A stretch of 62,958 bases of DNA, the filler included, from Lenisia limosa (taxonomy: Eukaryota > Protista > Breviatea): NCBI GenBank assembly GCA_001655205.1. It is 6 parts of 6 records of this genome, joined end to end, with 100 filler letters (N's around TTAATTAATTAA, not from the genome) between each part and the next. Parts side by side here need not be neighbours in the genome. Positions count along the whole stretch, not along the records: positions 30,352 to 54,923 come from LPNZ01001855.1; 5 more parts are not named here. The stretch is one strand, 5' to 3'. The translations under genes were made by a program, and so were the position numbers. Shown here one piece after another: positions 4,331-54,906 of the stretch (its first letter is position 1; the number at the start of each line of letters is the position of its first letter). The notes beneath the pieces are model-generated. The model saw only the letters and a list, made by a program, of their open reading frames with translations. It had not been told where the DNA came from and searched no databases.

Positions 4331-7300
4331 GTAGTTTGGGGTCATTTTAGACCAATGGGATGGAATCAGCCTCGTTGACACGGAACACGAATTTTTTTTT
4401 CTTTTTACAATCAAAGAATGGCTCTTGGCCCAAGGAATGGTGATGGCTTCCAGTCATCGGCTGTCTACCTTCCAACGGTTCCTTCTGCAACTTCGGTCAA
4501 AGCAACTAAAAATGATCCAATTTTCTTGATCCAAAGATAGCGTGCCAGGTGATCTCGTTGGCCGTTCTCTATCTTCTTCTTTCCCTCTTCTTCTTTTTTA
4601 ATCACTTTTTTGGACCTCTTCTTCACTGGCTTCGATGAGTCTAAAATGTAAATGACACAAAAAATTGAACATTGTGTACAGCCTAAAGGGGAAATTTCTG
4701 AGAGAATAAGGAGAGGTAGGGGAGTAAAATTAAAAAACTCTTCACAACCAGAAACCGCCAGGACTTCTTTATCTTTTTTATACCAGAAAGCCGTTATTGT
4801 AACTGTTGTGGACAGCCTGTCACAGCAAGCACAGAAACAGCTTTCTCTTGCCTTCATTTATGTTGTGAAAGGTGCATCCGCATCATCACTATCACACGTT
4901 ATAGCACAACTGAACCTCCCGAAGCTTCCGGAAGCATTCTTTAATAATGTGTTACTATTATTGAAATAGCAATGTATATCAGTGATATATGTAATATCAA
5001 TGTAATAATACAACACGAAGCTAAATGCACCTTAAAACATCACCACTTATCATATTATGATGATATTCAATTAAAATTCTCCAATCAACTTGAACAATCA
5101 CAAACCTGAAGTCCTGCGACATCCTTCAGTTGGGCTTCGGTGGAATGGGCGTAATCAGGGTTTCCAGTGTACTCATCTTGTGCCAAGAAGTATGACTGTA
5201 GCACTGACTTGGCGAGCTCGACTTCAGCTTCTGGCCGGAACAATCCATTGACAATCTCTTGCTGAATCTCAAACAGTGGTGCGGAAACTGAGTCAACAAA
5301 CGATGCGATTTGCTGCTCTTGGGGACCCATCTTCTTCTCGCCTTCTCTCATTGAAGCCTCAAACTTGGTGATTGTTCTGTGGCTGGGAAGGCCAGGCAGG
5401 TTGAGACGGCTTGGATTGTTTTCAACGAAGAGATCACCAGACTCGAAGGCCAAGTCCATACCAACGCGTGGAAGGCTGTAGCTACTAGCGGTAAGACGAA
5501 ACTGACTACTGCCAACTTCCTGAACCCCGTGGAGCCCGGGCACTTTGACCTTGGGGACTCGGGAGCAATGTCGCAGCTCCCCGAGGATGTGACGTCTTTG
5601 TAACCCCCCCCCTTTTTTTTTAAGTGAGAGGGGTCTGGTGACATGATACTTTGATTGTTACAAAGATCTCTTTTCTGACAACTTAGGTCAACTGGAGAAG
5701 CACCAGTTGTCATAATTTTTTCTTGATATAATATGTTTCTTGGTGTAAAATTGAAGATACGCAATTTCAACCAGTAGTAAATATTCCATATCATATTCAT
5801 CACCTGGAAAATCTCGATGTTACGCGAACAAATACCTGATAAATGAAAAACAATTTAAAAGGTATAAAAAAAACACACTCCGCGAATGGCTATTTCATAA
5901 GAAATATTCCTACTCCAAAACCACCAATTTGTTCCTTTCTTAAAAATACAACAGAACTACATTACAGACAAAAAGACACAGATCGTGAAAGTCTATTCTC
6001 ACACTTCATATTGAATTCAGACGAATGAGGGTTATGATACTGGCTGTGTTAGTGGAATAATAGTGGTCTTGACTTTAAGGTTTCAAAAAGACAGACAAAA
6101 TAGTTTTACGCTATTCTGTTTGATGACATCCAAAATAGTCGAGGACTATCAAGAAAGTCTTTTCAGAACGAAATCAAAATTCACTCCCACCTTTCATTTC
6201 CATCATGAGTAAACCCCTTGGGAGTTGGACTTTCGAGTGGCCAGGATAGCCAGGTCAATAAGAAAATCGTCACAGCGCTCACTTGTGTGGAACTGTGATG
6301 TGATGTGGGGTAGAGTGAACATATCACATTGTGTTTACCAGGGAAAATTAAAGCTCATATGTGCCCAAAAGCCAAAAACAAAGAGGCGTTTTCCCCCACC
6401 TTTATTTTACCGTCAATTCCCAAGGAAGCAACTGGAGTGGCAATTCTAAACCGTAAACAGATAAATACTTGATTAATGTTTGACAAACAGGCTACATTCA
6501 TAGTGTATAATAATAAATGTTAATATCATTATCATAGTACACTCCTTGATATGGTATGATATGCATTTTCTGTTTCATACTGAATAAGAAACAAACAGTC
6601 AACATCCAAGAATAGGTAATTGACCAACCTTGAAATAGTGCATGCCTCCTCTTTAATCCCCGTGGTAGACGCAAGGTGTTTTAGTAGAACTTCAGTAGTA
6701 TTGCGGACAATAGTACTGCCTAATATGGTAACACTGAATTTCACCTCCTAATATTGCCCAATAACTATTGTACCCCTCAATCAACCAATGTCCTTAAACA
6801 AGATGGTGGAAATGTTTCAGCTCGACTCGACTTTCAAAAACAGTCTTATCTAGAAAATGGCAAATACCTGGTAGGTAGGCCATGAACAAGGTACATGAAT
6901 AAGACAGCATTTTGACCCCCCCCCCCAACACAACNNNNNNNNNNNNNNNNNNNNNNNNNNNNNNNNNNNNNNNNNNNNNNNNNNNNNNNNNNNNNNNNNN
7001 NNNNNNNNNNNNNNNNNNNNNNNNGAAGACGATAGTTGGCGGCTTTGACACTAAAACGGTCAAAAAGGCACTCCTCTAAACAAAAGTGCTACAGTCAATA
7101 TAACATCATATCATACTGCAGCGAAATTTCGGCACTTCCTAAAAATCAACCGACAAAAGGCATGTGAACAAAACGGTAATGAGGATGTGGACGGATTCCA
7201 CCACACCCCCCCACGCCGAAGACAACGCCGCCCAGTCTTCTCGGGGTATTGTCAGGGTTATGGAGTCAAGCCCAGGGCATTCAGCGCAAAGTTGAAGGGT

Positions 7301-30411: not shown

Positions 30412-31368
30412 CTGGCATTGGTGGTGGTGGTGGTGGGCCTCCCATTCCTGAAGAAGGTTATGGTTTACAAATTGAAATCAATAATTTGCTCGTCACAAAC
30501 CTGGCATTGGAGGGGGAGGGGGAGGACCGCCAGACATTCCTGAAAGGGTTAATCACAGTATTTGAAATACTACACAAATCACCACATTAATAATAAATAT
30601 TGTCTAAGCTTATGCTGTATCCACGCTATATTGCCTCAACAAACCTGGCATTGGAGGGGGAGGGGGAGGGCCGCCAGACATTCCTGTGTTATTAGCGAGA
30701 GCAACATATTGAAATGATTAATATTCGAAACAAACCAGGCATTGGCGGGGGAGGAGGCGCGTTGACACCTAAGGTTTTTAATAAATGTGTGAATAAATAA
30801 ACATAAGGTGTTGCGGCTTACCACCAGGGGGCATTGGGGGAGGTGGAGGGCCATTGATACCTATATTATGAGTACAAATTGTAAATAACTAGGGCTACGG
30901 TCCCAAAAAAAAAGACTGAATTTCTCGATAAATTCTCAATAAATATCGATATTTTACCGGTCTTTTAACCGTAGGGAAGCCCTATCAATAACCTGGTCAA
31001 ATATCAATAGGCCCAATCATTCTCCTACCTCCTGCGGGCATTGGGGGAGGGGGGGGGCCGTTAATGCCTGGAACATTAAGTTCAGATGAGTTGAAGGAGG
31101 TTTTAAAAATGTGAATGTGGGAAGGACATTAAAAAAAAGGGGGTCATTTGATTGTGCAGCTTGGCATCCCATTCAAATAAATCTCAATACAACAAAAATG
31201 CGCCACCGTACCTCCAGCAGGCATGGGTGGCGGTGGTGGTCCGTTGATACCTGAAGCCAGGTGAAAAACCTCCCAAAAGCCACGTGAGAACCCCTCCAAT
31301 ACCAACCTCCAGAGGGCATGGGTGGTGGCGGCGGTCCTCCAGTTGCAGGTCCGGGCGGTCCTATACGG
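30412..31368 (-). repeat. Tandem array of short polyproline exons forming the formin FH1 domain
   Basis: Exons at 31212-31250, 31029-31067, 30822-30860, 30736-30768, 30645-30683, 30501-30539 and 30412-30447 (33-39 nt, each AG/GT bounded, phase 1), each encoding G-x-x-G/A-P5-7-M-P, plus one tract at the end of the preceding exon. Confidence 0.85.
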
Positions 31369-34300
31369 TCAATAGTTAGCATGTACAAACCGGCTGGTCG
31401 CGACTGCGCTTCCTTGAGGTCAGCACGAAGCTTATCCATTTCCTTAACTTGCTCCTTCAGCCTGTCAATCATCTTAAACGTCAGAATCTGCACAAAAGCC
31501 TAACCTTGACTTCTTCCTTCAGCTTCGGGATTTCAGCCGTATCTGCCTCAAGCTTCTTGACTACAAGGTCACAACCAAACAAGCAACAAACCTTGCTTCC
31601 TGAGCTCAGCAACAGGACCCAGACAGAAGCCGGCGACGGTCAGACCTGGCTCGGAGCCCGCCTCCACAAACACCGAAACTCCAGCTGCAACGTCAGCGGA
31701 CAGAAAAGGCCCACCCTTGGCATCCTTGGCCAGGCTGAGCAGAGGGGGCGTATCAGCTGCGATTCTCTGCAGGCTACCGGGGGGTGGTGGCACCTTTGTA
31801 GACACTTCTTCCTTCAGCGCTACAGTTGTCATAGAAACGCAAATCGTTGATCAGAAATCAATAGGTAGAAAAATTAATCTGCAGTTCCATTGCAGAGAGG
31901 AGCACAACCAACCTAAGAACTCCTCTTCAACCTTGCTGCCTGTACCACTTGCGCTTGCAGTTTCAAGCTCCTTAATCCGTGCCTTAGCAGCCAGAATCTT
32001 CTCCTCTGCCACCTTATGCTTTTCCTCCATAGCCTTGGCACGTTGTTCCGACTCTTCCGCCTCCTAAAGCATTATATTGTCCATGATTCAGTCAACGACA
32101 GCTGAATGAGGGCACTACCTTGGCCTTAGCCTGGAGGTCGGAGCTGGATGCGGATGTTGCGGCGGCGGCTGTAGCGGCCAGAGTAGCGGCTTGCTGGAGG
32201 GGGTCAACAACAGGCATTCCTTACCGATGCGTCTGATTGTGACTGTGAGAGTTCGGAAGTGAGTTTTTCCATTGTATTCTTTGTGGTTTGATGAGCGGTT
32301 TGTTCGGCTGTCAAACTAGAGGGTAAATTGCTGTTAGCCTCAGGCATACAGTGCACCAGATTCTTCGATTTTAGCATTAGCTCCAGCAAGTTCAGCCTTG
32401 AGAGATTCAATTTGAGTTTCGTGGGCCTGAAGTTGTGAAAACCGCCATATTTAGTCATGGATAAAGATGACCAGGAATCACCTCAAGCTTAGCCTTGGTC
32501 GCTTCCGCTTCAGCCAGCTGGGCTTTTGATGAAGACTCCATTGACGACTTGTGCTGAAGACGTCACAGGATAAAGGGGACTTACTTCAGCCTTGATGAGC
32601 AAGAGCTCCGCGTCAGCCACCTTCTTAGCTTCACGAAGGGCAACTGCTTCGCCTTGATTGTGAGATTGAAGACCGGCCCCAAAGGTTTGGTGATATCACA
32701 TACCTTCGGCCTTTGCTTGGAGAGAGGCGGCGGCAGACAAACGGCCAGCAAGCGCATTGATTTTTTCTCGTGATTCCGAAGCCGCTTTCTAAGAGAGTAA
32801 CTTCAAGAAAATAGCTAACACTTAAGCGTTTGACTTTGTCGGCTAAAAGCTCCATTTGTTCCCTTTCTTCAACTGCAAGTCCAAGTTCCTCACGAGAGAG
32901 GGAAATCTAAAAAGTAAAACCCAATAATACAAGAAGGTTTTCTTCACACATCAAAACTCAAACTTATTAATAGTGTTTTACTTAAAAATGTAAATTTAAA
33001 TAGGGGATTTTGGCCCACAGTTGGAGTATGCGAACAATATTTAAATAAATAAATAATTAAATATAAAAGACATACTACCTACCCCTTCTCCAGGCTGAAT
33101 ATTTTCAACACCCTTAGCAAGCTGGTGGATGAACGAGCTGCCAACTGACCACCATTTCAAACTACAAAATGATGAAACTGTTCTTCATTCTTTCATTAAC
33201 TAACACAATCATATTTGTTTTATTGGCTCCCCCCCCCCCCCNNNNNNNNNNNNNNNNNNNNNNNNNNNNNNNNNNNNNNNNNNNNNNNNNNNNNNNNNNN
33301 AAAAGATCAGCCTGAGGAGTAACAAAGAATAATAGAAAAGGCCAAGGGGCTACAGAGAAAAACAACAATAATTATAATCAAAACAGTACCCTCCAACCTC
33401 CACATCACTGTCTGAAGAAGCAAGCTGTCCCAGGTAGTGGAGCAGTGCTTGAGGGTTTCTACAAAGATCAGACCAATTGAATCCCGCTTCATAACCAACC
33501 GAACATCAACGTCACTGACACCAATCATCTCTTCCATTATCTGGGCGTCCGTCTTGATTTCTTCACAGTATGAGTCGATCACGTTCAAGAAGTTGCCCTT
33601 CGCTACTGGACGGAGTTTCTGTTTCGTGAATGGTTTCCTTCAAGACACAAACCTCCAAAATTTCGTCAATGCCAAGAAGGGTAAAGGACTGCCTGACGTG
33701 GCAACGGATATGAATATCGTCATTCGTATTTACGATTTCGTTGATGAGCGAGAGTGCGGTTTGCTGCACCATAGCATCGGAGGCGGACTTGAGTTGGAGG
33801 ATAATGGACTGGAAACGGTGGCGATGGCCTCGGACTTGTTGCAGGTTCTCAAAAGCTTTTACAATCAAACTGAAGAATAAGTCCCAAGCATAGGGAAAGC
33901 CCATTCACATACCTTTGCCCATACGGCAACTGGCAAATGACAGCAAGGAACTCAGAAACAAAGCACTGGTCTTTGCTGGGCCCGATGTCGTGTAACAGCG
34001 CAAGAGTTCGGATAATGTCGGGGCTTACCATCACTGCATCAATACCAATCTTGTATAATTAGTACCGAATAATATATGAATAGCGTCTCTCTCACTTGAT
34101 TGTTCATCAACTGGAAAACACAATGAGTGATTGCCGAAAGCATCTCAAAATCTTCGTGAGTTTTGCTGCAAAGTAAACCAACAAAAAGGTCTTCACGCCA
34201 CTAAGAAACGGTCCTTAACCCCTCAAACGCAATTCGCCGTTCATGTTTCTGCATGAGACTTGTGAGAAGCCCCAGGCCGTCAAGCTCAAGGAATCGGTTG

Positions 34301-34895
34301 ACCCATGTCATGGTGCGCGAGTGCAGCGCAACCTTTTGGATATTACCATTCATCCCAAAACATTCCCAAAGTATATAAAAATCCCTTGGTATATGCAGTG
34401 GACCTGCTTAGTTGCAAACCTTCAAGTTGATTAGATGGTCAAGGGTACACTCAGCCCTGATATGTTGGACATAGAACTCGGGTGGGGAAATCTTCTGAGC
34501 CTGGCTTGCGTCATTCAATTAGCTCGCAAATGTAATCAACATGAAGGCAAAAGAAAAAAGATATCTCAGGGCTGACCTCAGGTTCATGTAGAGACAAGAT
34601 TTTCCATTTCTGTTCCGGAGGCATCTTCATCATTGTCTCTAACTTCTCTCCTTTGACATTGAGCTCCTCCTACATTCATAAGACCCCCTCAACGGAAAAT
34701 CAAGGACAATTTACAACACATTCATCACAGATAGCAGACCACGAAGGCCTTGAAACGTGCTTCCAGCTCTTCAATTGGGGGCATTTCAGGTCCATCACCA
34801 TCGACTCTATGATAGTTATTTTCGTGAAAGAGAAACTGCGATACAAACTCTTGAAAATCTCCCTTCTTCTTCTTTTTTCTATTAAAAAGGGGCAT
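30412..34895 (-). CDS. Diaphanous-related formin: GBD/FH3, coiled coil and FH1; FH2 absent because the contig ends at ~30352
   Basis: ATG at 34895: MPLFNRKKKKKGDFQEVDGDGPEMPPIEELEARFKAFV, then MMKMPPEQKWKIL (Drf GBD pattern). FH3-like IIRTLALLHDIGPSKDQCFVSEFLAVICQLPYG. Coiled coil DRLKEQVKEMDKLRADLKEAQ, then eight polyproline tracts. Confidence 0.85.
30892..30982. mobile_element. MITE-like element, copy 3 (intron between formin FH1 exons)
   Basis: TA|GGGCTACGGT...ACCGTAGGGAAGCCC|TA with the same core as 26212-26306. Confidence 0.75.
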
Positions 34896-35409: not shown

Positions 35410-38162
35410 ATGGGACAGAAGAGTGTGGATACAACTCCTGCAGCTTTTGCCGAAATTGAAGGTCTCGCAAGCCAGACCTATTGCACAGAGTGCCACCGAG
35501 AGATTCCCTGGTTCAAGTTTTGCGTAGGTCTATGAAATGTCGTTGACTATATAGCTGGTCAGCATTAATTAATCTTGAAGCGGAAGCAGGTAACCACGCA
35601 GAGATTGTCTCCATTTTCAATAAAGTGTTGAGAGGTCGGTTGAGATTACACTATAATACCCCCCCCCCCCNNNNNNNNNNNNNNNNNNNNNNNNNNNNNN
35701 NNNNNNNNNNNNNNNNNNNNNNNNNNNNNNNNNNNNNNNNNNNNNNNNNNNNNNNNNNNNNNNNNACAAGTCAGGAACCGCTGATGGAAGAGAAGCTCTT
35801 GAAGAAGCTTTCAAGGTACATAGCTACTCACATATTAACTTCCTCCAGATTGCACTGAAGTCAGTCGGAACTGATGTTCGGTCCGGACCTATTTGGAAGT
35901 CGTATCTTGTGTTCCTTAATACGGCTGATGCGGACAACCCACGTATGGAGTCTATCAAGAACAGCTTCATCCGAAAAACCTACCAGAAAGCCATTTCTAT
36001 CCCGCACAATGCGGTTGAGGAAATTTGGAGAGACTATGACCTTTTTGAAAACAAGCAGGATCCTACCCTGGTATGTTGCTTGAAATTGGCCTTAACATTC
36101 AGGCACGGGGGCTGATTTCTTCTCATAGTGGAAAATATACAGCTGCTCGCCAAGTCTTGCGCCAACGTATATCACTTCAATCCGTAAGCTTTAATATTGT
36201 CCATACTTGGCTAATTCTCAGGACCTTAACGCCGACCTCCTTGCGATTCCACCAGGACTGACTAAAGAAGTTGATTCACAGCAGGTTTGTCGATGATTGG
36301 AGGAGTGACCTTGCAGCTTGCTCTTTGGAGGCGGCTTGTGCAGTATGAGCTGACTAACCCGCTCAATGTTGACCAAGATATTGTTAACACTCGCGTCATA
36401 CTTCTGTACAACCAGTGTCTTTCAAGCTTTAGACACTACCCTCATATTTGGTTTGTGGTATACAGCCAACATTTGTTGTTGACTGTTTAGGTTTGAGCTT
36501 GCATCCTTCGTTGAAAATAATTCCAAAAATAAGGAAGCTGATACGATCGCTGTGTTCAAGCGGTAATCGGGAGCGGGTCATTGTAATTAATTCAACGAAA
36601 TCAAACTAATTTTCCACAGTGCTGCAATTGCTCTTCCCAAAACTCCTGTGATTCATTTCAAACTGGCAGACTTGTTGGATAACAAAAAAGAAAGAAAAGT
36701 GGGGAGTTGTTCTTTGGCAATGTCGTTTTGTTCGTGTCTTAGTCTCTAGGAAGCTCTAGAAGTTTACGAAGATTTGATTAAACAATTTGAAAAGGTAGGA
36801 ATTGACAAAAGCTATGGCTCACCAATTAGAAGGAAGATGTCCCTCCAGTTGTCTTGACCCAAATGATGCGTTTCATTCGGCGCACTGAAGGAATTCAACC
36901 TGCCAGGAAAGCATTCCTTCGTTTCAAAAACGAATACGAAATTGCTCCGTTATTTGTAGAAGGTGCTCGAATTGAAGCTTATGTAAACAACAGTCACAAG
37001 GTTAGTTTTCTTTAAAGAAGTCTAGTTGTATTCCTTTATTCCATTGTTTCACCAATTAGGCTGCAATTAATCTCTATGAGCTTGGGTTACAAACTCACCC
37101 ACAAGACCCCTCTATAGCAATCGCCTATTGTGATTTCCTTGTTCACCTCAATGTTGGCCTCTTCGCCTGATATCTCTCACATTCCAGGATCCAACTAACA
37201 CTCGCACTGTTTTTGAAAGAGTAATCACATCAGTCCCTCCTGAAAAGGTAGCGTTTCTATTCTGTATTGTTATCCCCCAGGCAAGGGAGCTTTGGTCGCA
37301 GTACGTGACATTTGAGGCGTCTGCATGCAGTGATCTGGTCATTGTCGACAAAGTTGTCAAGCGTCTCCGTGATGATGACACTACAGTGGGTAAATGGTCG
37401 TCTTTTAATTCCGCAGACCTCCGCTTCTTTCTATGCAAACCTCGATCGATACCGCACAGGGCCGAATTGGCCTGTTTTAGCTTCCGAACTTACCTTGCTT
37501 GAAAACAAAGTGGTAAGTCAGGGTCTATTTCAGCCTTCTTTGCGTTGATGTTCACGAAACAGTCATTCAGAGATGCGCCAGCCTCTAAGAAGAACTCCTC
37601 CAAGGCACCAGTCTGGGCCGGACCGGTGCCGGACCTTGGTCTCTTTAAGGTGAGACAAGGTTGCTGCTTATTGATTGTCTAGGTCTTCACACCGATGCCC
37701 CTTGAAACTCCTGCACCTCCTGGAGCAACAGCTCTTAGAGATAGTGGGTTTTGTCACCCCCTTTTTTATTTATTTATTATTTATTTATTATTACCTAGGT
37801 ACGAAGGAAATTCCCTTTGGAGATAGTAGCTGTCTTTCTTTGGTTTCAGCCCTCCTGACAACTCTCCCTTGCGCAATCAAATATAAAGGTGCAGTAGTGG
37901 AATTATTGAGCTTGTCACTTGTGTTCCGAATCTCACACAACAGGTCCGTCAGCTGACCCCGACAGCGTCATGGCTTCTCTAAACAACTTCCCAATTCCCC
38001 TGAAGAACCAAGTGACGGAAGGGGTATGTTTTTCTTTGGGATACTAATCATCACAGGATGCAACGCTTGCTCAGGCCTTGGACGCCAGCAGACGAGGACA
38101 ATGGGTTAGTTGATTTTTTTCTGGTAATTCTGACATTTTAGCCGGGTAGACGGCATTTCTAA
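35410..38162 (+). CDS. CSTF3: Cleavage stimulation factor 77 kDa subunit (CstF-77 / Rna14 / Suppressor of forked), HAT repeats
   Basis: ATG at 35410. Exons ALKSVGTDVRSGPIWKSYLVFL, FIRKTYQKAISIPHNAVEEIWRDYDLFENKQDP, LWRRLVQYELTNPLNVDQDIVNTRVILLYNQCLSSFRHYPHIW and ELWSQYVTFE match recalled Suf/Rna14 patterns. Confidence 0.9.
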
Positions 38163-38476
38163 TGGTGTTTCTTCACGATGTAATATTATTCTATTTTTTT
38201 CTTTGAACGAAGAGGTCACAGTCACAAGTCTTTCTTACCCACCCTGAATTTCAAACCCAATAATGCTTAGTATTGTTGAACTATAAGTTCTTTGCAACCA
38301 GTATTGTGAAATGAAGTCCTTGATTGCATGTGCATCAGGCCACAGGCCGGACTAGAAAAACGGCGTGTAACCAGAAAAATCTTTTGAAATTCGAAATTCG
38401 AAATTATAAAAAAATTGGATTAGAAGATCAGTAGCTTAATAGCAAAAAGAGTTCAGAGGGTAAGAGGCAAATCAGA

Positions 38477-41400
38477 ATGTTATCTGCATTGAGATTGATG
38501 CCAGCAAGGGCGTTGGCCCGAACATTTTCGTCGTCACTGACAAACCTCACTAAGGTCGTTGTCGTTGGGGGGTAGGCTTATTTATTGCCCCAAATGTTTG
38601 TCACAACCACTATAGCGTTGCTGGTGGTGCATCTGCTGCTGCAAAGGCAAGGCGTCAAGATGAAAGCGCGGAAATCGTCATGTTTGAGAAGGGCAAATAC
38701 GTTTCCTGTATGAGAGAAGTTATTCGTGCTCTATTAACGAGATTCCTTTGATTATATCACCACATTTTCCTAAGTTATGGTTCGCATTCCATTGAAACCC
38801 ACTCCTCCTGCTCTCTTCTGACCATTTAGTTGCAAATTGTAAGAAGGCGAAGGGCAGAAAACAGCGAAAAATGAAAGGAGGGAAAAGTTCTTCTTTGTTT
38901 CCCTTGAACTAATCCATTTAGGTGGCCTTCCAATGTACATTGGCAAAGTTATCAAGGTGAGCGGAAAGAGCAAATTTAAAGATCAGGAGAGGTCTTTTTA
39001 GACAGAGTTGGGTTTTGACTCCTGCAATGAAACTGCTTCAGAAATCGAACGTAACACATCAGGACCGCTCGTCTCTCTTCCTTCAGACTCCCGGCTCTTT
39101 CTGGGATCGGTTCCGAGTTGATGTTCGAGTTGAAACCGAAGTAACCAAAATTGACCGAGGTTTGTGAATGGATATGGTGAGTGAAATGGTGTATTGTTGT
39201 ATCTGGTATCTGGCCGAAAGCACAACTTCGTAAATTGTAAAAAAAAATAATACCAAATTGCTTAATGACAAACTGGTGGAATACTCAAGAAAACATCTCA
39301 ATGCAAGCATTTTAAACCCCAAATTCTCAATTTTCCTTTTTGGAAAGTAATGTAACATTGCAGAGAACAAAGCAGTTCATTGGATCCGTGGTGAGGAGTC
39401 TGGTACTGAGGATTATGACAAACTCATCCTCTCTCCTGGTAAGATAGTGTGATTAGTATGACAAACAGGCGCATCGGCTATTATGCCGCCTGTCCCGGGT
39501 GCAGATGCACCAAATGTCTTCACTGTCAAGGTTTGTTTACCGAAGTATCAGTAACATAACCATCAGACTGTCCCTGACACCGACCGTATTAAGGCATTCC
39601 TGAAGGGGCGTGAAATTAAAAACGTCACTGTCATTGGTGGCGGCTTTATTGGTAGGTTACAAGCCATAGTAAAAACAAATTATGACCGAGGGATAATGTG
39701 ACACAGAATGTGTCTTTTGTTTAAATTCATCAGATGCAACCAAGGCCGATATGAAATATGTGTGTCGAGTCTGTCTTGATTCAATCCCTCTTCTGACTAT
39801 TTTTTAAAATTTTGAGACTTTATTCAAGAAAAACAATTCTTACTCTAGCTTGCTCTATCTGACGCTCCAGGATTAGAGTCAGTTGAATCGTTCCACCATC
39901 TTGGAGCTAAGGTCACAGTAGTTGAGAAAATGGACCATCTTTTGCCAAACTTCGACGCTGACATGGCCTGGCCGGTAAGAATCATGAGGCCTGACGATTT
40001 AGATGTCGGAATGGCTTCGCCATCACAACGTCGATGTGATTACAGGTATGCTCTTATTGATAGTTACTGACAATCAGGAGACGGTGTTGCTGAGTTTAAC
40101 ACAGAGGAAGAGCATGGTGGCATTGCTGAAAGGTAACAACTCCAGTGCTGGCTTATATTTTAGCATCCGTCTTGAGTCCGGGAAAGAGATCGAATGTGAC
40201 CTTGTCATCGCTGCTATTGGAGTGCGCCCCACCACCAAGCTGGCTATTGATGCTGGTCTTGAAATCGGCCCTTCTGGTGGAGTTCGTGTCAACAGCAGAC
40301 AACAAAGCAGCGGTTTGCAAGTGTTGATATGAGGGAGTAACCAAGTAGACCCAGACATCTTTATCGCAGGAGACATTTCAGAAGTTCAACATCTTGTATC
40401 TAAACAGCCCACTCGCTTAGCTCTTGCCGGTCCTGCCAACAAGCAAGGTATTTTTCAACACGCCAAACTGCCAATTGTGCGCCAACACCACATTCATTGT
40501 ATCAGGACGTGTTGCTGGAGCGAATGCAGTTGGGGGTGACATGGAGTTCCATGGTGCCATTGGAACAGGTGCCGTGCAGGTGATGGGGCTTACAGCCGCC
40601 TCTACTGGCCTCAATGAACGGGACTGCAAGCGCCACGGTATTGACTATGAGGTTTGTAGCGCTTCAGCTTGATTTTTCTCATGACAGGTTATTCTTCTTC
40701 ACCCCGCTGACCACGCGACCTACTACCCTGGGTCGCAGCTTATTGACATGAAGCTTTTGAGCGAAAAGGAAACTGGTCGAATTCTTGGAGCGCAGGTTTG
40801 TTGATTTCTCATCGACCTGATCATTCTAGCTTATTGGAACCCAAGGAGTGGACAAGAGATGTGATGTTTTCGCTACAGCCATTGCCGGTTTGGCTGAAAA
40901 CTGGTTTATCTTTCTTTTCATGTGAAAAGAGAAATAGTAACGATGACAGGGAACATGACTGTATATGATTTGGAACAGCTTGACCTTGCCTATTGTCCAC
41001 AGGTCTTTGGGTGAATAGTGTTATGCTGATTACCAAATATTTGTCATTTATATCATATCAACAACATAAAAATATCAGGGAAAACCCAAAGATTACTGTT
41101 CATTAACTGCGTAGATTGGTTCAGCAAAGGACCCTGCGATGATCGCTGGCTACTGCGCTGCCAACTCTCTGAGAGGATTGGTGGGCTACCTCAAAATGCC
41201 TATCCACCCTAATCCTAACACTTTGACCTTTTAGCATCACCCCATCACTCCTGAGGGGCTCCACAATCTTCTTCATGGAAATGAGTTCAAGGACATGCAA
41301 CTTATTGACGTCCGAACATATGGTGAAGCAGACGTCTCACAGGTTGGTGTCCAATGGTGCACATTGTGTTAACCTTAGATTCTCGGAACAACTCACACCT

Positions 41401-41827
41401 TGCCGCTTGACAGTCTGCGTGAACTTGTACAGCATCTTGACCCCGAGGTTTGTGCTGTTTTTCAAGATCTTCTTCTCTCATTATCCAGGAGAAAACGGTT
41501 GTTTACTGCAGATCCGGACTCCGAGGCTATGTTGCTGAGTGCATTTTGAGACAGCATGGATTCACGTGGGGGAGCGGACATGTCGATATGAAGTTCTGGC
41601 AATTTTGAACCCATTTGTTCTGTGGAGTAAATTAAAGTTTTCATGAATGAAAAGATGTGATGAAAACTGATATTTTAGGGATGTGCATAATCTCACTGGT
41701 GGCATTCTCTCTATTGAAGGTTTGTGGACTGAGTGGGACGTCAATTTTTGGGAGAGGTTTTGTTTGGTGTTTTCACCTCGCAGGCTGTGACATTGATCAC
41801 AAGGAGTATCGCCCCTCAAGCTATTAA
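38477..41827 (+). CDS. CoA-disulfide reductase-rhodanese fusion (CoADR-RHD / Npsr-like persulfide reductase) with a predicted mitochondrial-type presequence
   Basis: About 23 exons. N-terminus MLSALRLMPARALARTFSSSLTNLT; FAD motif KVVVVGGVAGGASAAAKARR; catalytic YVSFANCGLPMYIG; YDKLILSPGA; NADH motif VIGGGFIGLE..VTVVE; DPDIFIAGD; LALAGPANKQGRVAG; HATYYPG; GVDKRCDVFATAI; DLEQLDLAYCPQIGSAKDP; rhodanese LIDVRT..VVYCRSGLRGYVAECILRQHGF..NLTGG. TAA at 41825-41827. Confidence 0.93.
38830..38838 (+). other. 9-nt microexon (TTGCAAATT) within the CoADR catalytic motif
   Basis: Flanked by catttag and gtaag. It is needed to join TCC T| and |GT GGC into S-F-A-N-C-G-L-P. Confidence 0.85.
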
Positions 41828-42284
41828 CTTATTATTGAGCAATATGTCATGTAATATTTATCGGTTTATATCAACAACAGATGTGTCAAGAAAATTAAGG
41901 CTCATAAACACATAAACAAATAAACAAAGGTTATGGTGTCAACTGGATTGAGATTATGATGAACCGTGGTCTAATGGTCGACCATTATCTCATGATATGC
42001 AGCATGGCCAGCATGGCTGTGTAGTCACATGGGTTAGATGGTAGTGGTGTAGTATGTATACTGCAGGTATATTGCGATTATACATACCTTAGCAACATGT
42101 ATATTGGAAGACAAAAGGGGCAAAGAACTAAAAAAAAATGCATATACCCCTCGCGCCCGCCCTTGCCNNNNNNNNNNNNNNNNNNNNNNNNNNNNNNNNN
42201 NNNNNNNNNNNNNNNNNNNNNNNNNNNNNNNNNNNNNNNNNNNNNNNNNNNNNNNNNNNNNNNNTGAGGCAGAATACGGAAACA

Positions 42285-45200
42285 AAAAACTTGCTGAGGG
42301 TTCGAGGTTCCCGTAACACATGTGGTGATCCCCACAATAAACCAACCTTCTCCCCATCTTCCAACGCTATGTCGACTGTGAACACTGAAGATGTTGAATG
42401 CACTTCACCTTCTTTGATAGACAGTGAGGAAGAGGGCGGTCGACTCTCACAATCTAGGTCGCCCAACAACATCCCACAGTCTGAACCTTCCGTTATGGCC
42501 TGATGATGACGATATCGGTCCAGCTGCCATTGTTGATGCGTACGTTTGGGATTTCTATTTTGATTACTGTTTAGTTTAAACGAAGTCCCTGAACCCGCAA
42601 TACCTCGTCAGGCTGTTAGAGGACAAGGTTGATTTTATTTTGATTGTGATTTCGTCATTATTGCAGGACGACCCCAATATGTCACTGCTCGAGACAGAAT
42701 TAGAAGAGTTGTTTTAGCAAAGTTTGCTCACAATTAATTTTTTTATTATTATTTAGAGAAGAACCAGCCCCACTTGAAAACCCCATTTCCTCGCAACCAG
42801 AGAAGGCCCGCACACCAACCCCACCAACCCCATCGTCATTATACTCCTACCAGTCATCAAGATCAAGTTCTCCTTCTCTTCGCCCGGTATGTGGGGCTAA
42901 TAATGGTATACTCAGAAACGTTTTCGAAACAAGCTTTGGTCTTTATCTACAATTCTATATTTATAGAGATTCTATTGATGGATAATTCTCAAAAAGTCCT
43001 ATTTTCAAAATATTAACACATAATACCATAGGACTCACCATTATCGCCAAAAGTCCAAGATGAGGAGGAGGTTGAAAATGTTTTTGTACCCTCTTCTTCG
43101 CCATCTCGCCTCAGAGTTAGACAGGATTTATTAGGTTTGAGGCGTTGATGAGTCTGAACAGGTTCTCAATGGTTCCAAATAATACCGGGATCTATTGATG
43201 ATGTGTATATATAGCAATGAGAAATAAAAANNNNNNNNNNNNNNNNNNNNNNNNNNNNNNNNNNNNNNNNNNNATTCACCCAATCATTTTGCCTTAAAAC
43301 TCTGTGCACACAGCTTTCTGCGTGCCTCCCCAACATACCTACAAGGATGTGTATAGATATTTATTTTTCGTGGTTCACAATAGATATTAAGGAGCCTAAC
43401 CTCGCAGGGACTTCAAAATCATCCCGCAAAGCACCTATCCACCACCCTCCGCGAATCCAATGTTGTGCTTCTGTAGCAGTGGAGGTCCCTTTGGTCCCCC
43501 AGGTTTGTGCTGCTAACGGTGTTTCTTACTGCCAAGGGCTCGTTAGATATCACTGAGGAAGTTGGATTTTACATGAAGCCTGGATGTGTCCCTCTGTCTG
43601 CCCGCCCGGTGAATGTGACAAATGAAGAAGGTGGGGACGGTTGTTGGTGTCACATTTCAGTACCCGTTGCTGTTGAGAAGCCTATGCTTACAATGGAGTC
43701 GGCAGCGTCAATGGACTGGCAGGACCCCCCAACCCCTGTAATATCCGTTTCGGTTCAACAACGTCCTCTGTCTGCCGGCCCTGAGGCCCCTGTAACTACA
43801 CCAGTACAGGTTGTTCCAGTGGAGTCTGAATCTGCCAAGGAACCCGAAAAGGTAGTCGTGGTTCCACCCAAGGTTATGGAAGTACCAAAGAACACAGTTC
43901 CATTGGCATTTAAGACAACTATTCCCCCAAAGCCGCCGCAGCCCCCTGCACCAGATGTTTTTAAAGAGATAGAGCAAAGGCAGCCAAACGTGGTGAGTAG
44001 CAGTCCCGAGCGGAGGGGATCGATTAGCCCAACCAAACTAACTCGCGGGCCTCCACGCCGACGCAATCGAATGGAAATGTCTCAACAGCCCCAGGAGTCG
44101 TTATATGCGAAGCAGATCGCCTTGAAACCTGACACTTTATTCGGCATTTCTCCCAATGCCCAACCTTCCGAAGGAGCCTTCTTCACTGCAAGCAGGACGG
44201 GTACTGAAGAAGACAGATATGGAAGTGGATTACAGAAGGTTGGCTTGACTGGGGAGTTCCTTTTACTTTTTAGCTCACATTCAATCTGGATGAAGCCCAA
44301 GCGTTCAAGTCCTCTTTAAAGGTAAGGAGAAGTCAGCATAGTCAACTTCAATTTACAAAATAGGATACTTTAGACCGACGTCGTGACCATGAACTATTGA
44401 ATTTGGAACTGGTGGGTGAAGTGTAGTGTTGACTTTCAAGATTAAAGACCATGTCAAACAGCAATTTCTTGAAGACCGCCATCTCTTAGAGAGTCGGCAA
44501 AGGCAGGCTGAGGCCAAAAAGTTGGCCCTGCAAGAACAATGTCGGGATGATGAATTGATTGAAAAGGTAAGGGTTAAGACCTTGAAAAGTCATTATTTAG
44601 ATGGAAAGCATGAAGACGATTGCACAACAAAATTTGGAGCAAAAACGGGAGCAAGTCAAAGCAATTAAGGTAATATGCAATTATAATTTTATACCCACCA
44701 TCCATTTGGCACCTATTATTTTGTTTTGTTAAGCGACGATGGATTGTTGACTTTACGTTTTGTTTGACATTACAGTCGCAACGACAAGAAGTCAGCCAAA
44801 ACCTTCAACATACAAAAGCGGCTGCTAATACCCAGGCGGCAAACCAAATTAGGTTTGATCGTATCTTGAGTTACCTTTTCAGAGAGTATTCCGAGAATGT
44901 CAAGAAACAACGTGCCCAAAAGGAAGGTCTCCATAAAACCCAGGTGGTGGCTTTTTGCAATGCATGAAAAGATCATTGCACTCTTTGATTTGGGATTTTC
45001 CTTTCAGGAACCCATTACTTTTCAGCAGCATTTAGCTCATTTTGTATTTAGCAAAATGTTTGAGAATACTTTTGTTGTACTTAGCTAACTGCTCGGAAGA
45101 TGGATTTAACAACTACTTTTTCCCCCCCCTAAAAAGTAATAGCTAAGTACAAAATGAGCTTAATACAACTAAGTTCTGAAATGTTGATTTTCTCAGTAGA

Positions 45201-51997: not shown

Positions 51998-54906
51998 CTA
52001 CTCATTCATAATGGCTTCGATTTGCTGGTGATGCTCGTACATCTTATGGAAAATCTACGCAATAAAGGAATACAAGTACCTTATATTTCTTGTTGTGATA
52101 ATCAGCATCGTCCTGATTGGGGTAGACAATCGGGCCAGATTTGGTCATGCCTCTCATGGCATCGATAACAGTTCTAAAAAGTAATGTCTTCGTATAGTAC
52201 ATGATATTCATGCGCTCCCCACTCCCCACGAGTATTTTCCTGAAGCAGTAGCTGCAAGAATGGCGGACCCAAGTAAAACAGGTTCTGCAGTGCCAGGAAT
52301 AACCAAATTGCAACCAGTCACATCAGAGAGTTGGGTCATAAATACTTTGTTCTGAGTGTGTCACTCAGAGATTCTTCCCACCTTAGAGAGACCACCAGCA
52401 ACAAATACTGTAGAAATGTGGAATCCATTTGAATTGAGAGTGGAGATAATATGCCGTGAACCATGGGCAACCTAAATGGTTAGACAAGGCTCATTTCATC
52501 TTGCCCACCGATTGAATAGCAGTCAAGTACTGAAGAGCAAGGTCATCGATCGTATTTGAGAGTATGAGTCCTGACACAACACCTGTGGATGTTAGCTTTT
52601 GGCAGCACAAACCAGTGAGAGAGGGGTTGGCACGGGGGGAACGGTTTCCATGGAAATAGGGGAGCATGTGGAGCTTCCTAGTCAAATAGCACATGGGTTT
52701 CTAAACTGTCAACACAGTTGTCGCCTACCATGGACTTCTTTTGGAGTTCTTCAAGAACTGAGTTCAAATACTCATAGATATTCAGTCCCTTGGCAGATGC
52801 ATTCTTCTTGGCAGCGTCGCCACATCCGTGACTATTGATGACATGGTCAACTGGAAATGGGTCAGCAAACAGTCACTACTGCGTACTCAGTGCGCCCGAT
52901 GCTGATTGTCCTCCTTCAGCAAGCCACACTCCAGGAATCATTGCTATACTTGTTACAAAACAGAATATGAAGAAAGAGCATCAGGGAAAGGACTCTTTTT
53001 CATCGCATACAACCGTTGTACCATCATACAGTATATCATATGATAATCCCAACAAACATCTTACATTATACGGTATGGTAATCAATAGTGATACCGTCCC
53101 GTCACCACTAACCACTTTCATAGGGCCCCCAGACACCCTTGACAAAGAGTGGGCCGTCTTGTTGGTTACTGCATGCCATGAAGCAGGAAGAGGTTCCGCT
53201 GATGAGTGCAAGACGATTGTCAATTGTGTTGAGGCTTGCCTGCGCAGTAAGATAGAACTGACACGCCTTACCTCAGGGCAGCAGTCACAATCTGACGCAA
53301 TGACACCGAGTCCACCAGCGTGGGCATCAATGATAGACACTCCGACTGCGGTACCAGGCTTCAGTCCAAGTTCCGCAGCGGCTTCAGAAGAGAGGCCGGG
53401 ATGGACGGGTGTTCCCATTGGCAAGACCTTTTGTCCTGCATACTTTATTCTCCAAAGTCACTTACCGAGCCGGGCGAAGTTGTCCGACACCAGATCATCA
53501 AGACCAACCATGGAGAAGAATTCCTTATTCCACCCATCTTGTGAATCAACATAAGTCATCTTGCACGTCGTGCTAGAATATGAGATGTTGGTCCTGATTA
53601 ACTCTTACCTGCAAAGAGAACGAATGTTGGAGCCAGTAGCGCGACTACAGTAATAAAATGCCAGTGATCGATCAACACCCTGCTGTCAAGGTTGTATAAG
53701 AATGCCCAATAAAAAACCCTTTCTTACTAAGTCAACCAATCAGGAAGGTCAAAAAAGTGGGTTGCTTTCTGAATTTATGAGAACCACTCTGAATGCAGTC
53801 TAGCATTGAAAGTATCTACCCTCTCCACCTGATAAGTGCTGGGGTGGTGTTTCTTGAGCCATAAAACCTTGGGAATCTCCATTTCAGGCGAAATTGTGGA
53901 TCCAACATATCTGCAATATTACGGGAGACAATTTGAAAAAAATCAAGCCTCGAGGAAGAATATATAATGTGATTAATATCATATGTCTTATAGCAAGAGA
54001 AGATTAGAGAAAACCAGTCACATACTTGAGAACACCATGGTTTGTGGAATTAATGAAGTCGGCTTCTTCAATTGCCCTGTGGTCCATCCTATTAGAGTGA
54101 GTCCATAATTCTATCCGGTAAAGAAGAGCGCCCCTTACCAAACAATAACATTGAAGTCCTCATTGCCGTCTGTGTTAACTATTAGGGTGAGAATACAAAC
54201 GGTTGAGGAGCAATGGTGGTAGTATGTTATTTGTTTTTGTGTTAGATCGAAATTTAACAAGGAATCAAAAACCAATCCTTTATAAATATTTATAAATATA
54301 TCCTAGTATATCTAAGATATTTATATCATAGTGTATAATAGCAATAATAATAATAGATAGTAGTAGATAATAACAAACAGCAAACCTGGAAGAGACTTAT
54401 CTTTCTCATCAACAACAACCAAAGAACAGGTTGCATCAAACCCTATGAAGTCAATTTACAAGAAATACAACAAGACAGCAATAAAAATCGACACCTACCC
54501 AGCCCTTTAATTCCCTCAGGTTCGACCTTGGATTCTTCAACAACAGATTTGACGCATTTGCAGATACTCTCCCAGATGTTGGTTGAAGACTAAAACATCA
54601 CCATTATTAAACTCTCAAATAATAGTACATTAGAAATATGGCAATAAAGCAATAAAGCATATAATCTGAGTCAAAGAATGAAAGGAATGCAAACCTGTTC
54701 AAAAAATAAGTGCTCAGGATTTCTGGTAACAATCTCTTGAACGCTAAATAATGAAATATTAATTATTACTTAATCAAATTAAGAAACAGAGGATGATAAA
54801 GACGAAAAGAAACCCACGCAGAGGAAACAAGGCTACCATCTGCTGTAAAGAGACCTGCCCTTGCACTTCCTGTTCCGACGTCAATACCAATGTAATACTC
54901 AGACAT
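51998..54906 (-). CDS. FGGY: FGGY-family carbohydrate kinase (D-ribulokinase-like)
   Basis: [85 protein letters not shown] and AGGLSK. Ends [21 protein letters not shown] at 51998-52000. Confidence 0.92.

Follow-up and report, generated by a model that had tools for sequence, protein, structure and literature searches.

A spliced and expressed gene for a rhodanese-fused CoA-disulfide reductase in the breviate Lenisia limosa, with a putative organellar presequence

Gene Structure, Transcript and Genomic Setting

The DNA analyzed here (the window) is a stretch of 62,958 nucleotides joined from six parts of the genome of Lenisia limosa, and all positions are counted along it. On its + strand lies a gene encoding a CoA-disulfide reductase (CoADR) fused to a rhodanese. 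We rebuilt it from the sequence as 23 exons and 22 GT-AG introns, with the coding sequence running from an ATG at 38477 to a TAA stop that ends at 41827 and encoding 589 aa (Table 1). The original prediction had counted about 22 spliceosomal introns, and this splice model was borne out, at the same coordinates, by a 1888-nt contig from a polyA RNA library (run X1) that maps from 38409 to approximately 41877. At least 15 of the predicted splice joints, among those listed, were present in this contig, together with two seen as deletions of 28 and 30 nt, and the contig also included the 9-nt micro-exon inside the active-site motif. One acceptor had to be moved by 3 nt: the RNA joint 40311-40348, which skips 36 nt, places the end of intron 12 at 40348 instead of 40345, and one Val is thereby lost from the protein.

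The assembled RNA contigs also provided the evidence on the transcript start. No AUG precedes Met1 in the mRNA, whose 68-nt 5′UTR contains an in-frame stop (TAG at 38432), although shorter transcripts starting downstream of Met1 may also exist. RNA coverage was absent at 38211-38396, between the neighboring Suf gene and the start of the mRNA. The 3′ end of the mRNA was calculated from the length of the X1 contig minus UTR and coding sequence. The gene is thus expressed as a polyadenylated transcript from which 22 host-style introns are removed.

The upstream neighbor is a separate Suf/CstF-77 gene with at least 17 GT-AG introns of 31-59 nt, which is the same tiny-intron style as in the CoADR-rhodanese gene, and a Diaphanous formin gene lies farther upstream. 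An 11,225-nt DNA contig of run X2, with uniform depth, spans both the Suf/CstF-77 and the CoADR-rhodanese genes. The gene had been described as flanked on both sides by eukaryotic genes without any artificial spacer. This stood for the upstream side, both genes being contained in a block (35766-42167) free of N runs, and needs a qualification for the downstream side, where a 97-N scaffold gap (42168-42264) parts the gene from all following sequence. The GC content was 0.50 in the coding sequence, against 0.46 in the Suf exons, and 0.38 in the introns. These data establish a real, spliced and expressed eukaryotic nuclear gene.

Table 1. Positions of the CoADR-rhodanese gene, its exons and its upstream neighbor in the window.
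Feature	Position	Strand	Basis
Upstream neighbor, Suf/CstF-77 gene, separate from CoADR gene	35766..38210	+	Pfam Suf E=1.3e-9; spliced 2175-nt RNA contig
mRNA	38409..41877	+	polyA RNA contig; 5′UTR 38409-38476, CDS 38477-41827, ~50 nt 3′UTR
N-terminal extension, residues 1-25 MLSALRLMPARALARTFSSSLTNLT, putative mitochondrial/MRO presequence	38477..38551	+	composition, amphipathicity, motif
Exon 1: N-terminal extension, first Rossmann strand KVVVVGG	38477..38571	+	gene model; RNA joint skips 44 nt, GT..AG
Exon 2: FAD-binding GGVAGGASAAAKARR...EKGKYVS	38616..38707	+	model, RNA; G31, V33, A34, G36, R45 in family-invariant columns
Exon 3: 9-nt micro-exon TTGCAAATT, F-A-N of SFANCGLP, first base of Cys66 codon	38830..38838	+	RNA: TTGCAAATT between joints 38707 and 38922
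Exon 4: finishes Cys66 (T|GT), then GLPMYIGKVIK, with Met70	38922..38956	+	model, family alignment
Exon 5	39063..39159	+	model, RNA
Exon 6	39364..39438	+	model, RNA (30 nt left out at 39438)
Exon 7	39469..39530	+	model, RNA
Exon 8: NADH Rossmann start VTVIGGGFIG	39567..39651	+	model, RNA, conserved columns
Exon 9: NADH-binding beta-alpha-beta unit, Glu202 (39924-39926)	39871..39974	+	Pfam Pyr_redox E=2.9e-7, 31.3 bits
Exon 10	40003..40045	+	model, RNA (28 nt left out at 39974)
Exon 11	40078..40132	+	model, RNA
Exon 12: longest, 49 full codons	40164..40312	+	Pfam Pyr_redox_2 E=2.8e-9; best PDB match Shewanella Npsr 3NTA, 42 bits
Exon 13: acceptor corrected to 40348|40349	40349..40447	+	RNA joint
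Exon 14	40506..40651	+	model, RNA
Exon 15: HATYYPG	40688..40795	+	model, RNA; Y394, P396 family-invariant; Pyr_redox_dim weak, E=0.013
Exon 16	40830..40887	+	model, RNA
Exon 17: LAYCPQ	40950..41002	+	model, RNA; Q455 common only to nearest bacterial clade
Exon 18: reductase end, linker	41115..41180	+	model, RNA
Exon 19: rhodanese start (LIDVR)	41235..41342	+	model, rhodanese profile; D502, R504 invariant
Exon 20: rhodanese	41379..41447	+	model, rhodanese profile
Exon 21: rhodanese active-site loop VVYCRSGLRG, Cys543 at 41507-41509	41489..41565	+	C543, G546, R548 invariant
Exon 22: rhodanese end (NLTGG)	41679..41719	+	model, conserved columns
Exon 23: C-terminal tail, TAA stop	41784..41827	+	model

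Protein Family and Conserved Residues

Judged by its sequence, the protein belongs to the rhodanese-fused CoA-disulfide reductase family (Npsr, CoAPR, CoADR-RHD) as a full-length member. The original prediction had named this prokaryotic family on the basis of a CoADR core and a rhodanese with its active cysteine; all the motifs that it cited were found, Cys66 and Cys543 included, and the profiles, the conserved columns and the tree agree with the assignment. Residues 26-575 are colinear with bacterial family members; over about 550 aa, the protein is 42-48% identical to the products of 80 bacterial genome loci, and this rises to 54-57% for the nearest clade. Residues 26-476 scored 601.6 bits with a profile built from the reductase portion of the bacterial proteins, matched end to end (profile positions 1-449), and residues 496-574 scored 79 bits with the corresponding rhodanese profile, which gave no more than 2.7 bits for 200 shuffles. 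Of 67 columns with a conservation of 95% or more across 96 bacterial homologues, the protein keeps 62, including C66, E202, Y394, Y452, D502, R504, C543 and R548.

The FAD Rossmann motif GGVAGG occupies residues 31-36, with G31, V33, A34 and G36 in columns conserved at this same level. The single redox cysteine, Cys66, lies adjacent to the flavin in SFANCGLP, where S62, A64, N65, G67 and P69 are conserved. The NADH fold has the GGGFIG motif and, where its second strand ends, the acidic Glu202 (G179, G181 and G184 conserved, and E202 in at least 95% of the 96 bacterial homologues), and Glu202 points to NADH rather than NADPH as cofactor. The score of exon 9 exceeds the Pfam Pyr_redox cutoff of 22 bits; Pyr_redox_dim, on one exon alone, gave 16.1 bits, below its cutoff. 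The interface domain shows the motifs HATYYPG (392-398) and LAYCPQ (450-455), with Y394, P396, Y452 and P454 conserved. Single rhodanese exons are too short for Pfam, and the loop C543-R-S-G-L-R548 (VVYCRSGLRG) is intact, with D502, R504, C543, G546 and R548 conserved. After CGLP, Met70 replaces a Tyr that is invariant in 96 of the 96 bacterial homologues and in 16 of the 16 nearest ones, and four other near-invariant columns also deviate in the Lenisia protein.

Phylogenetic Position

In the careful tree, the Lenisia protein falls in a clade of 30 rows whose other 29 are bacterial (support 100/99), and its sister (80/83) is a subclade holding Nitrospirales MAG proteins; the phylogeny, which includes the Npsr orthologue L061 from Shewanella, places it inside the family. 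The LAYxPQ motif is common to this protein and its nearest bacterial clade. The nearest Atlas clusters were 87-100% Bacteria, the JGI scan gave bacteria only, and an exhaustive search with exon 12 alone as query found no non-bacterial sequence closer, apart from the homologue L001 described below. Also, a literature search found no published eukaryotic member of the rhodanese-fused CoADR family. Nesting within an all-bacterial clade supports lateral acquisition from bacteria, which had been proposed before any tree was available. With 1.56 substitutions per site, the terminal branch of the Lenisia protein is very long, which suggests an old transfer or fast later evolution.

L001 is a JGI metagenome contig (sample 3300048587) with a eukaryote-type gene that has GT-AG introns and encodes a reductase and a rhodanese. 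Both genes are intron-bearing and share this architecture, but their proteins are only 41% identical. The L001 gene has a GC content of 58%, longer introns and GTGAG donors, and its 5′ end is missing from the contig. Its product is 61% identical to a Chthoniobacter protein and is nested in an Acidobacteriota/Verrucomicrobiota/Kuenenia clade. By this placement, L001 came from a separate bacterial clade than the Lenisia gene.

N-Terminal Extension and Predicted Localization

It had been noted from the sequence that about 25 residues without acidic side chains, carrying an R-x-F-S site, precede the FAD motif. This holds for MLSALRLMPARALARTFSSSLTNLT, which lies before the first Rossmann strand and, the X1 contig starting 68 nt upstream, is encoded in the transcript from the first AUG. 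The extension contains 3 Arg, no Asp or Glu, 7 Ser/Thr and 10 Ala/Leu; the three Arg are at helical spacing, and the first 46 positions of the protein are free of acidic residues. By heuristic assessment, and not by a trained predictor, its 11-residue hydrophobic moment was 0.66, approximately 3 sd above the mature-protein mean of 0.25 (sd 0.13), and an R-3 motif (RTF|S, residues 15-18) predicts cleavage after Phe17, whose codon ends at 38527. The extension lacks the hydrophobic core of a signal peptide, and the protein ends in …PSSY, which does not resemble a PTS1. In the alignment, the nearest bacterial homologues have their start Met at residues 21-26, leaving about 21 N-terminal residues without bacterial counterpart.

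From these features, we infer import into the mitochondrion or a related organelle (MRO). With a probability of roughly 60%, the locus would represent a domesticated bacterial gene whose product is a homodimer-type flavoenzyme of the persulfide-reductase family, sent to the mitochondrion or MRO. The same enzyme could be cytosolic, with the extension being a by-product of start-codon choice after the transfer or a signal for another compartment. We consider this unlikely, even though LGT-derived flavin oxidoreductases of the CoADR superfamily in anaerobic protists are mostly cytosolic. The case for targeting is heuristic, short N-terminal extensions are possible in some bacterial ORFs by start-codon choice, and some 20 basic residues may arise by chance or serve another purpose; however, a cytosolic location is opposed by the acid-free stretch of 46 positions, the helically spaced Arg with the high hydrophobic moment and a textbook R-3 cleavage motif, by the lack of a signal-peptide core and of a PTS1-like C-terminus, and by the placing of the extension just where the bacterial proteins have nothing.

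Proposed Activity and Alternative Explanations

A mechanism can be proposed in analogy to the bacterial and archaeal enzymes of known structure. FAD would be reduced by NADH and would in turn reduce a Cys66-S-S-CoA mixed disulfide. The tightly bound CoA thiol would then swing to Cys543 loaded with the sulfane sulfur of a persulfide or polysulfide, or CoA-SSH would be taken directly, and H2S would be released with regeneration of the thiol. [quoted passage not shown] By the same analogy, the Lenisia protein may act as an NADH-driven CoA-persulfide/polysulfide reductase, and may serve as an NADH-reoxidizing sulfur sink or a CoA thiol system. Its basic, acid-free and amphipathic extension, with R-x-F|S, would direct it to the mitochondrion or MRO, where it would keep the CoA pool and the acyl-CoA enzymes persulfide-free during sulfide stress, and could reoxidize NADH at the expense of sulfane sulfur.

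The enzyme might here be mainly a CoA-disulfide reductase or an O2-scavenging NADH oxidase, like related single-cysteine flavoenzymes, and not a persulfide reductase, which appears rather improbable. The PDB matches show that the family grades into CoADR, NADH oxidase and NADH peroxidase, and Met70 in place of an invariant Tyr near the redox Cys, together with the four other changed columns and the very long branch, suggests that substrate or activity may have shifted. Nevertheless, the protein retains both cysteines and the complete CRSGLR loop, in a rhodanese domain recognized at 79 bits, and the characterized fused enzymes need the rhodanese Cys and prefer persulfides over disulfides (PMC9405070, PMC7969121). 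As about 100 rhodanese residues are kept across 5 exons, selection seems to act on this domain, in keeping with a persulfide reductase.

That the gene is an ancient eukaryotic one, descended for example from the mitochondrial endosymbiont and lost by most lineages, without lateral transfer, is very improbable: the very long terminal branch and the host-like introns and GC do show long residence, but the protein lies within a well-supported bacterial clade and not as sister to all bacteria, the exhaustive exon search gave nothing closer than bacteria, and the intron-bearing L001 belongs to another bacterial clade, a joint clade being rejected (p-AU 0.036). Bacterial contamination or a chimeric assembly, which the all-bacterial best homologues and the sequencing of the sample as a mixed (meta-) library might suggest, is refuted, as anticipated in the original prediction, by the removal of 22 spliceosomal introns in polyA RNA and by linkage to the Suf gene, on one DNA contig of uniform depth and with introns of like style, and also by an identity of at most 57% to any bacterial protein.

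Significance and Comparison with Known Systems

A laterally acquired persulfide reductase imported into the organelle can be compared with the canonical mitochondrial unit for sulfide oxidation (SQOR, ETHE1 persulfide dioxygenase, TST rhodanese), which also handles persulfides, in the matrix, but is oxidative and O2-dependent. To our knowledge, this unit includes no reductive, NADH-driven CoA-persulfide reductase. [quoted passage not shown] Import of the Lenisia enzyme, if true, would be one solution to lifting this block, and the gene would be an experimentally tractable example of lateral transfer equipping mitochondria, or the organelles derived from them in anaerobes, for life at high sulfide and low oxygen. 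We tentatively suggest that it is the first eukaryotic CoA-persulfide/polysulfide reductase targeted to an organelle, using NADH to clear CoA-SSH and other sulfane sulfur from a mitochondrion or MRO and complementing or replacing the O2-dependent SQOR-ETHE1-TST unit, and that, since the L001 eukaryote obtained its enzyme independently from another bacterial clade, such genes may have been captured repeatedly in adaptation to sulfidic low-oxygen habitats. In bacteria and archaea, where the family has been studied in detail, it keeps the CoA pool persulfide-free. The Lenisia gene is a clean case of full domestication of a bacterial gene, with 22 introns at host density, a 9-nt micro-exon in an active-site motif and an added targeting-like leader; should this leader be non-functional, an ordinary but well-documented lateral transfer remains.

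Among bacterial enzymes with known structures, Shewanella loihica Npsr (PDB 3NTA, 3NT6, 3NTD, 4OCG) likewise combines an FAD/NADH reductase with a C-terminal rhodanese and has one redox Cys besides one rhodanese Cys. This enzyme falls in another bacterial subclade, is cytoplasmic, has no targeting extension and is proposed to act in sulfur respiration. Its Shewanella orthologue L061, 42% identical to the Lenisia protein, scores 800 bits against 3NTA, 632 against 3ICS and 536 against 8A56. Enterococcus faecalis CoAPR (PDB 8A56) and Bacillus anthracis CoADR-RHD (PDB 3ICS) have the same architecture and the same two catalytic cysteines, but stand in a CstR-regulated bacterial operon, with no organelle involved; their sequences are more remote, the Lenisia protein sharing 43% identity with the Bacillus-type loci L054 and L072. 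The nearest relatives are uncharacterized bacterial CoADR-RHD proteins (P0518, P0517, P0514, P0524, and P0520 and P0508 from Nitrospirales MAGs), which are 54-57% identical over about 550 aa and share with it length, domain order, both cysteines and LAYxPQ, in a sister position in the tree. In contrast, their genes are intronless and in bacterial contexts, and the proteins start at the first Rossmann strand, without the 21-residue extension, and have Tyr at the position of Met70.

A sulfur context was also observed in bacteria, with TusA and DsrE fusions and, in a Nitrospirales MAG, a sulfite-oxidase-type neighbor.

Transcript and gene structure

Joining the three forward frames of 38400-41900 at GT-AG sites gave one continuous open frame in 23 exons, separated by 22 introns. 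The original prediction had proposed about 22 introns over 38477-41827, and this splice model was matched by RNA, with one acceptor corrected. A single contig of 1888 nt, from the polyA-selected RNA run X1 of the same study as the DNA, covered 38409 to about 41877 with the predicted introns spliced out; 15 of the joints were present among the matches listed, and 2 others appeared as deletions of 28 and 30 nt. The contig moved the end of intron 12 to 40348, which gives an intron of 36 nt, and the protein therefore has 589 residues. The introns measured 28-219 nt (median 49), nine of them being in phase 0, ten in phase 1 and three in phase 2. The nine letters of the micro-exon, TTGCAAATT, were present in the RNA contig between 38707 and 38922, and the contig also confirmed the division of the Cys66 codon into T and GT at the junction of the micro-exon with exon 4 (38830-38838, 38922-38923). 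The 5′ leader of the mRNA comprises 68 nt before the ATG, with no further ATG and with an in-frame TAG at 38432; Met1 of the putative presequence is therefore the first AUG. All RNA support comes from assembled contigs of a single study, and the gene was present only in X1 and in run X2, a possible source of the assembly. An Rfam search of the sequence piece carrying the gene gave no RNA family match.

Coordinates of the reductase gene, its micro-exon and the neighbouring genes
Feature	Position	Strand	Basis and remarks
Reductase CDS	38477-41827 (ATG at 38477, TAA end at 41827)	+	Frame reading, RNA contig
9-nt micro-exon	38830-38838	+	Codes for F-A-N within SFANCGLP and supplies the opening base of the catalytic Cys codon
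Suf/CstF-77 gene	35766-38210	+	Pfam Suf, RNA contig; at least 17 introns within about 2.4 kb
Diaphanous-type formin	31173-34353	-	GBD and FH3 domains, proline-rich FH1-like stretch; upstream of Suf; may hint at the host lineage

Genomic setting

Two ORF pieces upstream, also on the plus strand, matched the Pfam family Suf (E = 1.3e-9 and 3e-5), and a 2175-nt RNA contig ending near 38210 displayed GT-AG introns of 31-59 nt in this gene. No RNA coverage was found at 38211-38396, between the Suf and reductase transcripts. On the DNA side, an 11,225-nt contig of X2, with even depth, bridged Suf and the entire reductase gene; the N-free block extends over 35766-42167 and a 97-N scaffold gap starts at 42168. 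The reductase gene equals the neighbouring Suf gene in its extreme intron density and in intron size, and GC was 0.50 in its CDS (GC3 0.47) vs 0.46 in the Suf exons. Dense and very small introns thus look like a property of the genome and not of the transferred gene. Contamination or chimerism is ruled out by the spliced polyA RNA, by the one DNA contig over both genes, and by the neighbour-like introns and GC, as had been argued from the introns and from the gap-free linkage to Suf.

Four scaffold gaps (N runs) were located at 33242-33300, 35671-35765, 42168-42264 and 43231-43273. The second is filled by real sequence in a Logan DNA contig, and a loose end was reported at 35766. Also, ORF pieces at 52494-53424 on the minus strand resemble an FGGY-family carbohydrate kinase (weak Pfam FGGY_C match, E = 0.017) and are probably another intron-split gene.

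Membership in the rhodanese-fused CoADR family

Database searches used single exons as queries, and the spliced model was compared locally. Single exons matched Pfam Pyr_redox and Pyr_redox_2 above the cutoffs, and among solved structures they matched those of the CoADR / Npsr / NADH-oxidase group. When exon 12 was searched exhaustively by HMMER against 1.84 billion representatives, its own ORF fragment came back at 100% and all others at no more than 63% within the exon, and in a JGI metagenome scan with the same exon all matches were intronless bacterial genes with identity of 60% or less. By local BLAST, the spliced model shared 42-48% identity over about 550 residues with full-length bacterial proteins from many phyla. 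The closest identities, 54-57%, were obtained with database proteins P0518, P0517, P0514, P0524, P0525, P0528 and P0515 and with two proteins from Nitrospirales MAGs. This nearest bacterial clade was brought in by the third protein search, seeded with locus L065. Searches seeded with P0038, from a Planctomycetota clade, or with the Chthoniobacter ORF of L024 retrieved only relatives close to each query; none was eukaryotic, and none came closer to the window protein.

Profiles built from bacterial sequences only were matched end to end by the reductase part (601.6 bits, residues 26-476) and at residues 496-574 by the rhodanese part (79 bits; 200 shuffles scored no higher than 2.7 bits). Among the columns conserved in at least 95% of 96 bacterial homologues, 62 of 67 are retained, including C66, E202, Y394, Y452, D502, R504, C543 and R548. 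The departures are Y70M, L191F, T299S, A306I and A453C. The first of these (38930-38932) affects the position just after CGLP, which is Tyr in each of the 96 bacterial homologues, as it is in 16/16 nearest relatives. The Shewanella locus L061, which is 42% identical to the window protein, encodes the orthologue of Npsr (3NTA, 800 bits) and matches B. anthracis CoADR-RHD and E. faecalis CoAPR at 632 and 536 bits, respectively; the family is therefore tied to characterised members. At the sequence level, the window protein carries all the defining features of the rhodanese-fused CoADR family, and by sequence it belongs to the Npsr / CoAPR / CoADR-RHD group; the CoADR-rhodanese fusion first recognised in the genomic sequence is upheld by both retained cysteines, by the conserved columns and by the two profiles.

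The architecture is a minimal one, with two domains, compared with longer bacterial forms. Relatives of the sister subclade (P0434, P0439, P0452, P0482 and others, about 740 aa) bear a C-terminal PF11127 extension (YgaP-like membrane), whereas other bacterial branches of the family (Atlas clusters, about 820 aa) add TusA and DsrE sulfur-carrier domains.

Bacterial origin

Bacteria account for the great majority of the rhodanese-fused CoADR family. Of 600 pattern matches in species-representative prokaryotic genomes, 599 encode a relative, and the nearest ESM-Atlas clusters are 87-100% Bacteria. The unplaced long branch seen in the first trees was a sampling artefact, as the placement became clear once nearer sequences were added. 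In a quick tree, the window protein adjoined a 35-row bacterial clade (SH-aLRT 96). In a careful tree of 65 rows, it fell in a 30-row clade whose other 29 members are bacterial (ultrafast bootstrap 100, SH-aLRT 99), where it was sister (80/83) to ten proteins of 550-564 residues, including the Nitrospirales MAG sequences. The motif LAYxPQ is common to the window protein and this nearest clade, whereas the wider family has LAYAPP. This nesting in a bacterial clade at 100/99 supports the lateral origin that had been proposed for the gene. The taxonomy of the donor is based on two named MAG proteins in the nearest clade, whose other members carry no taxon name.

The nearest relatives are ordinary bacterial genes. 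That of P0518 lies downstream of pyruvate kinase on an intronless contig, and that of P0520, in a Nitrospirales MAG, lies among c-type cytochromes and beside a sulfite-oxidase-type molybdoenzyme. Around the nearest named homologue (L103:6001-10867, Nitrospirales MAG GCA_020430285.1), c-type cytochromes were observed on both sides, with an adjoining sulfite-oxidase-type molybdoenzyme that has its own cytochrome c; this neighbourhood is a sulfur-oxidation setting and not a cst-type operon.

At 1.56 substitutions/site, the terminal branch leading to the window protein is several times as long as those of its sisters and reflects either an old transfer or faster evolution afterwards. Both the number of introns (22) and a composition resembling that of the host fit long residence.

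N-terminal extension

The start Met of the 16 nearest bacterial proteins aligned at window residues 21-26. Residues 1 to about 21, whose exon also encodes the first Rossmann strand, thus have no bacterial counterpart. Residues 1-25 include 3 Arg, 7 Ser/Thr and 10 Ala/Leu; Asp and Glu are absent, and acidic residues begin only at position 47. The maximum helical hydrophobic moment over 11 residues was 0.66 in the extension, vs 0.25 ± 0.13 elsewhere in the protein, and R15-T16-F17/S18 matches the R-3 processing motif. The extension lacks a hydrophobic core like that of a signal peptide, and the protein does not end in a PTS1-like sequence. The composition and the RTF/S site agree with the earlier description of a leader of about 25 residues, free of acidic residues and with an R-x-F-S site. 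By these heuristics, the extension looks like a classical matrix presequence, and we consider it probable (about 0.6-0.65) that the protein is imported into a mitochondrion or related organelle.

Proposed mechanism and role

In the solved enzymes, a surface rhodanese Cys takes up sulfane sulfur, bound CoA ferries the sulfur to a Cys beside FAD, electrons come from NADH, and H2S leaves; persulfides and polysulfides are favoured over disulfides (PMC7969121). By sequence, the window protein retains every part that this mechanism needs, and Glu202 indicates NADH, not NADPH. By analogy with the Npsr / CoAPR / CoADR-RHD enzymes, sulfane sulfur would be received by rhodanese Cys543 and delivered by enzyme-bound CoA to Cys66 beside FAD, and electrons from NADH would then release H2S. 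Because of the Y70M change and the long branch, there is room for a shifted substrate.

The Enterococcus CoAPR is specific for CoA-SSH and depends on both cysteines; it has been proposed to shield enzymes that use CoA or acyl-CoA against poisoning by persulfide (PMC9405070). [quoted passage not shown] If imported, a CoA-persulfide reductase would reverse the block on this dehydrogenase, and in an anaerobic organelle its reaction would also serve as an NADH sink; the choice between CoA-persulfide clearance and NADH sink depends on the host organism.

Novelty and a second intron-bearing copy

Our full-text literature searches gave no report of a eukaryotic CoADR-RHD member. With respect to the known family, the new features are the eukaryotic nuclear host, the full domestication (22 introns, a micro-exon and host-like composition) and the added leader. 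The finding would carry more weight with proof of import into the organelle and of CoA-SSH reductase activity.

Unannotated eukaryotic homologues may exist. The exon-search match P0140 lies on L001, a 5.8-kb contig (GC 58%) of JGI metagenome 3300048587 in which the coding sequence for reductase and rhodanese is broken into at least 10 pieces, bordered by cag on the left and by gtgag or gtgcg on the right; at least one unannotated eukaryotic homologue therefore exists. Its protein shares 61% identity with a Chthoniobacter protein but just 41% with the window protein, and it is nested in an Acidobacteriota/Verrucomicrobiota/Kuenenia clade (support 99-100). Forcing the two intron-bearing copies together cost 56.6 log-likelihood units (p-AU 0.036). 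Since they belong to separate bacterial clades, the enzyme entered eukaryote-type genomes at least twice.

Among fragment candidates with unaligned flanks, only P0140/L001 was real. Others that resembled exon-bounded eukaryotic ORFs, such as P0003, P0011, P0058 and P0138, were really adapter-tagged or frameshifted bacterial fragments. Several short database proteins, including P0003 and P0058, start or end in MCIRDS, SLIHI or CLLYTS, which we take to be translated sequencing-adapter sequence; such fragments mimic exon-bounded pieces and should not be taken as eukaryotic. In L001 itself (1-5755), the 5′ end is missing and some exons are doubled in tandem (630-701/799-903; about 1100-1190/1214-1405), which may reflect duplicated or alternative exons, or a fault in the assembly.
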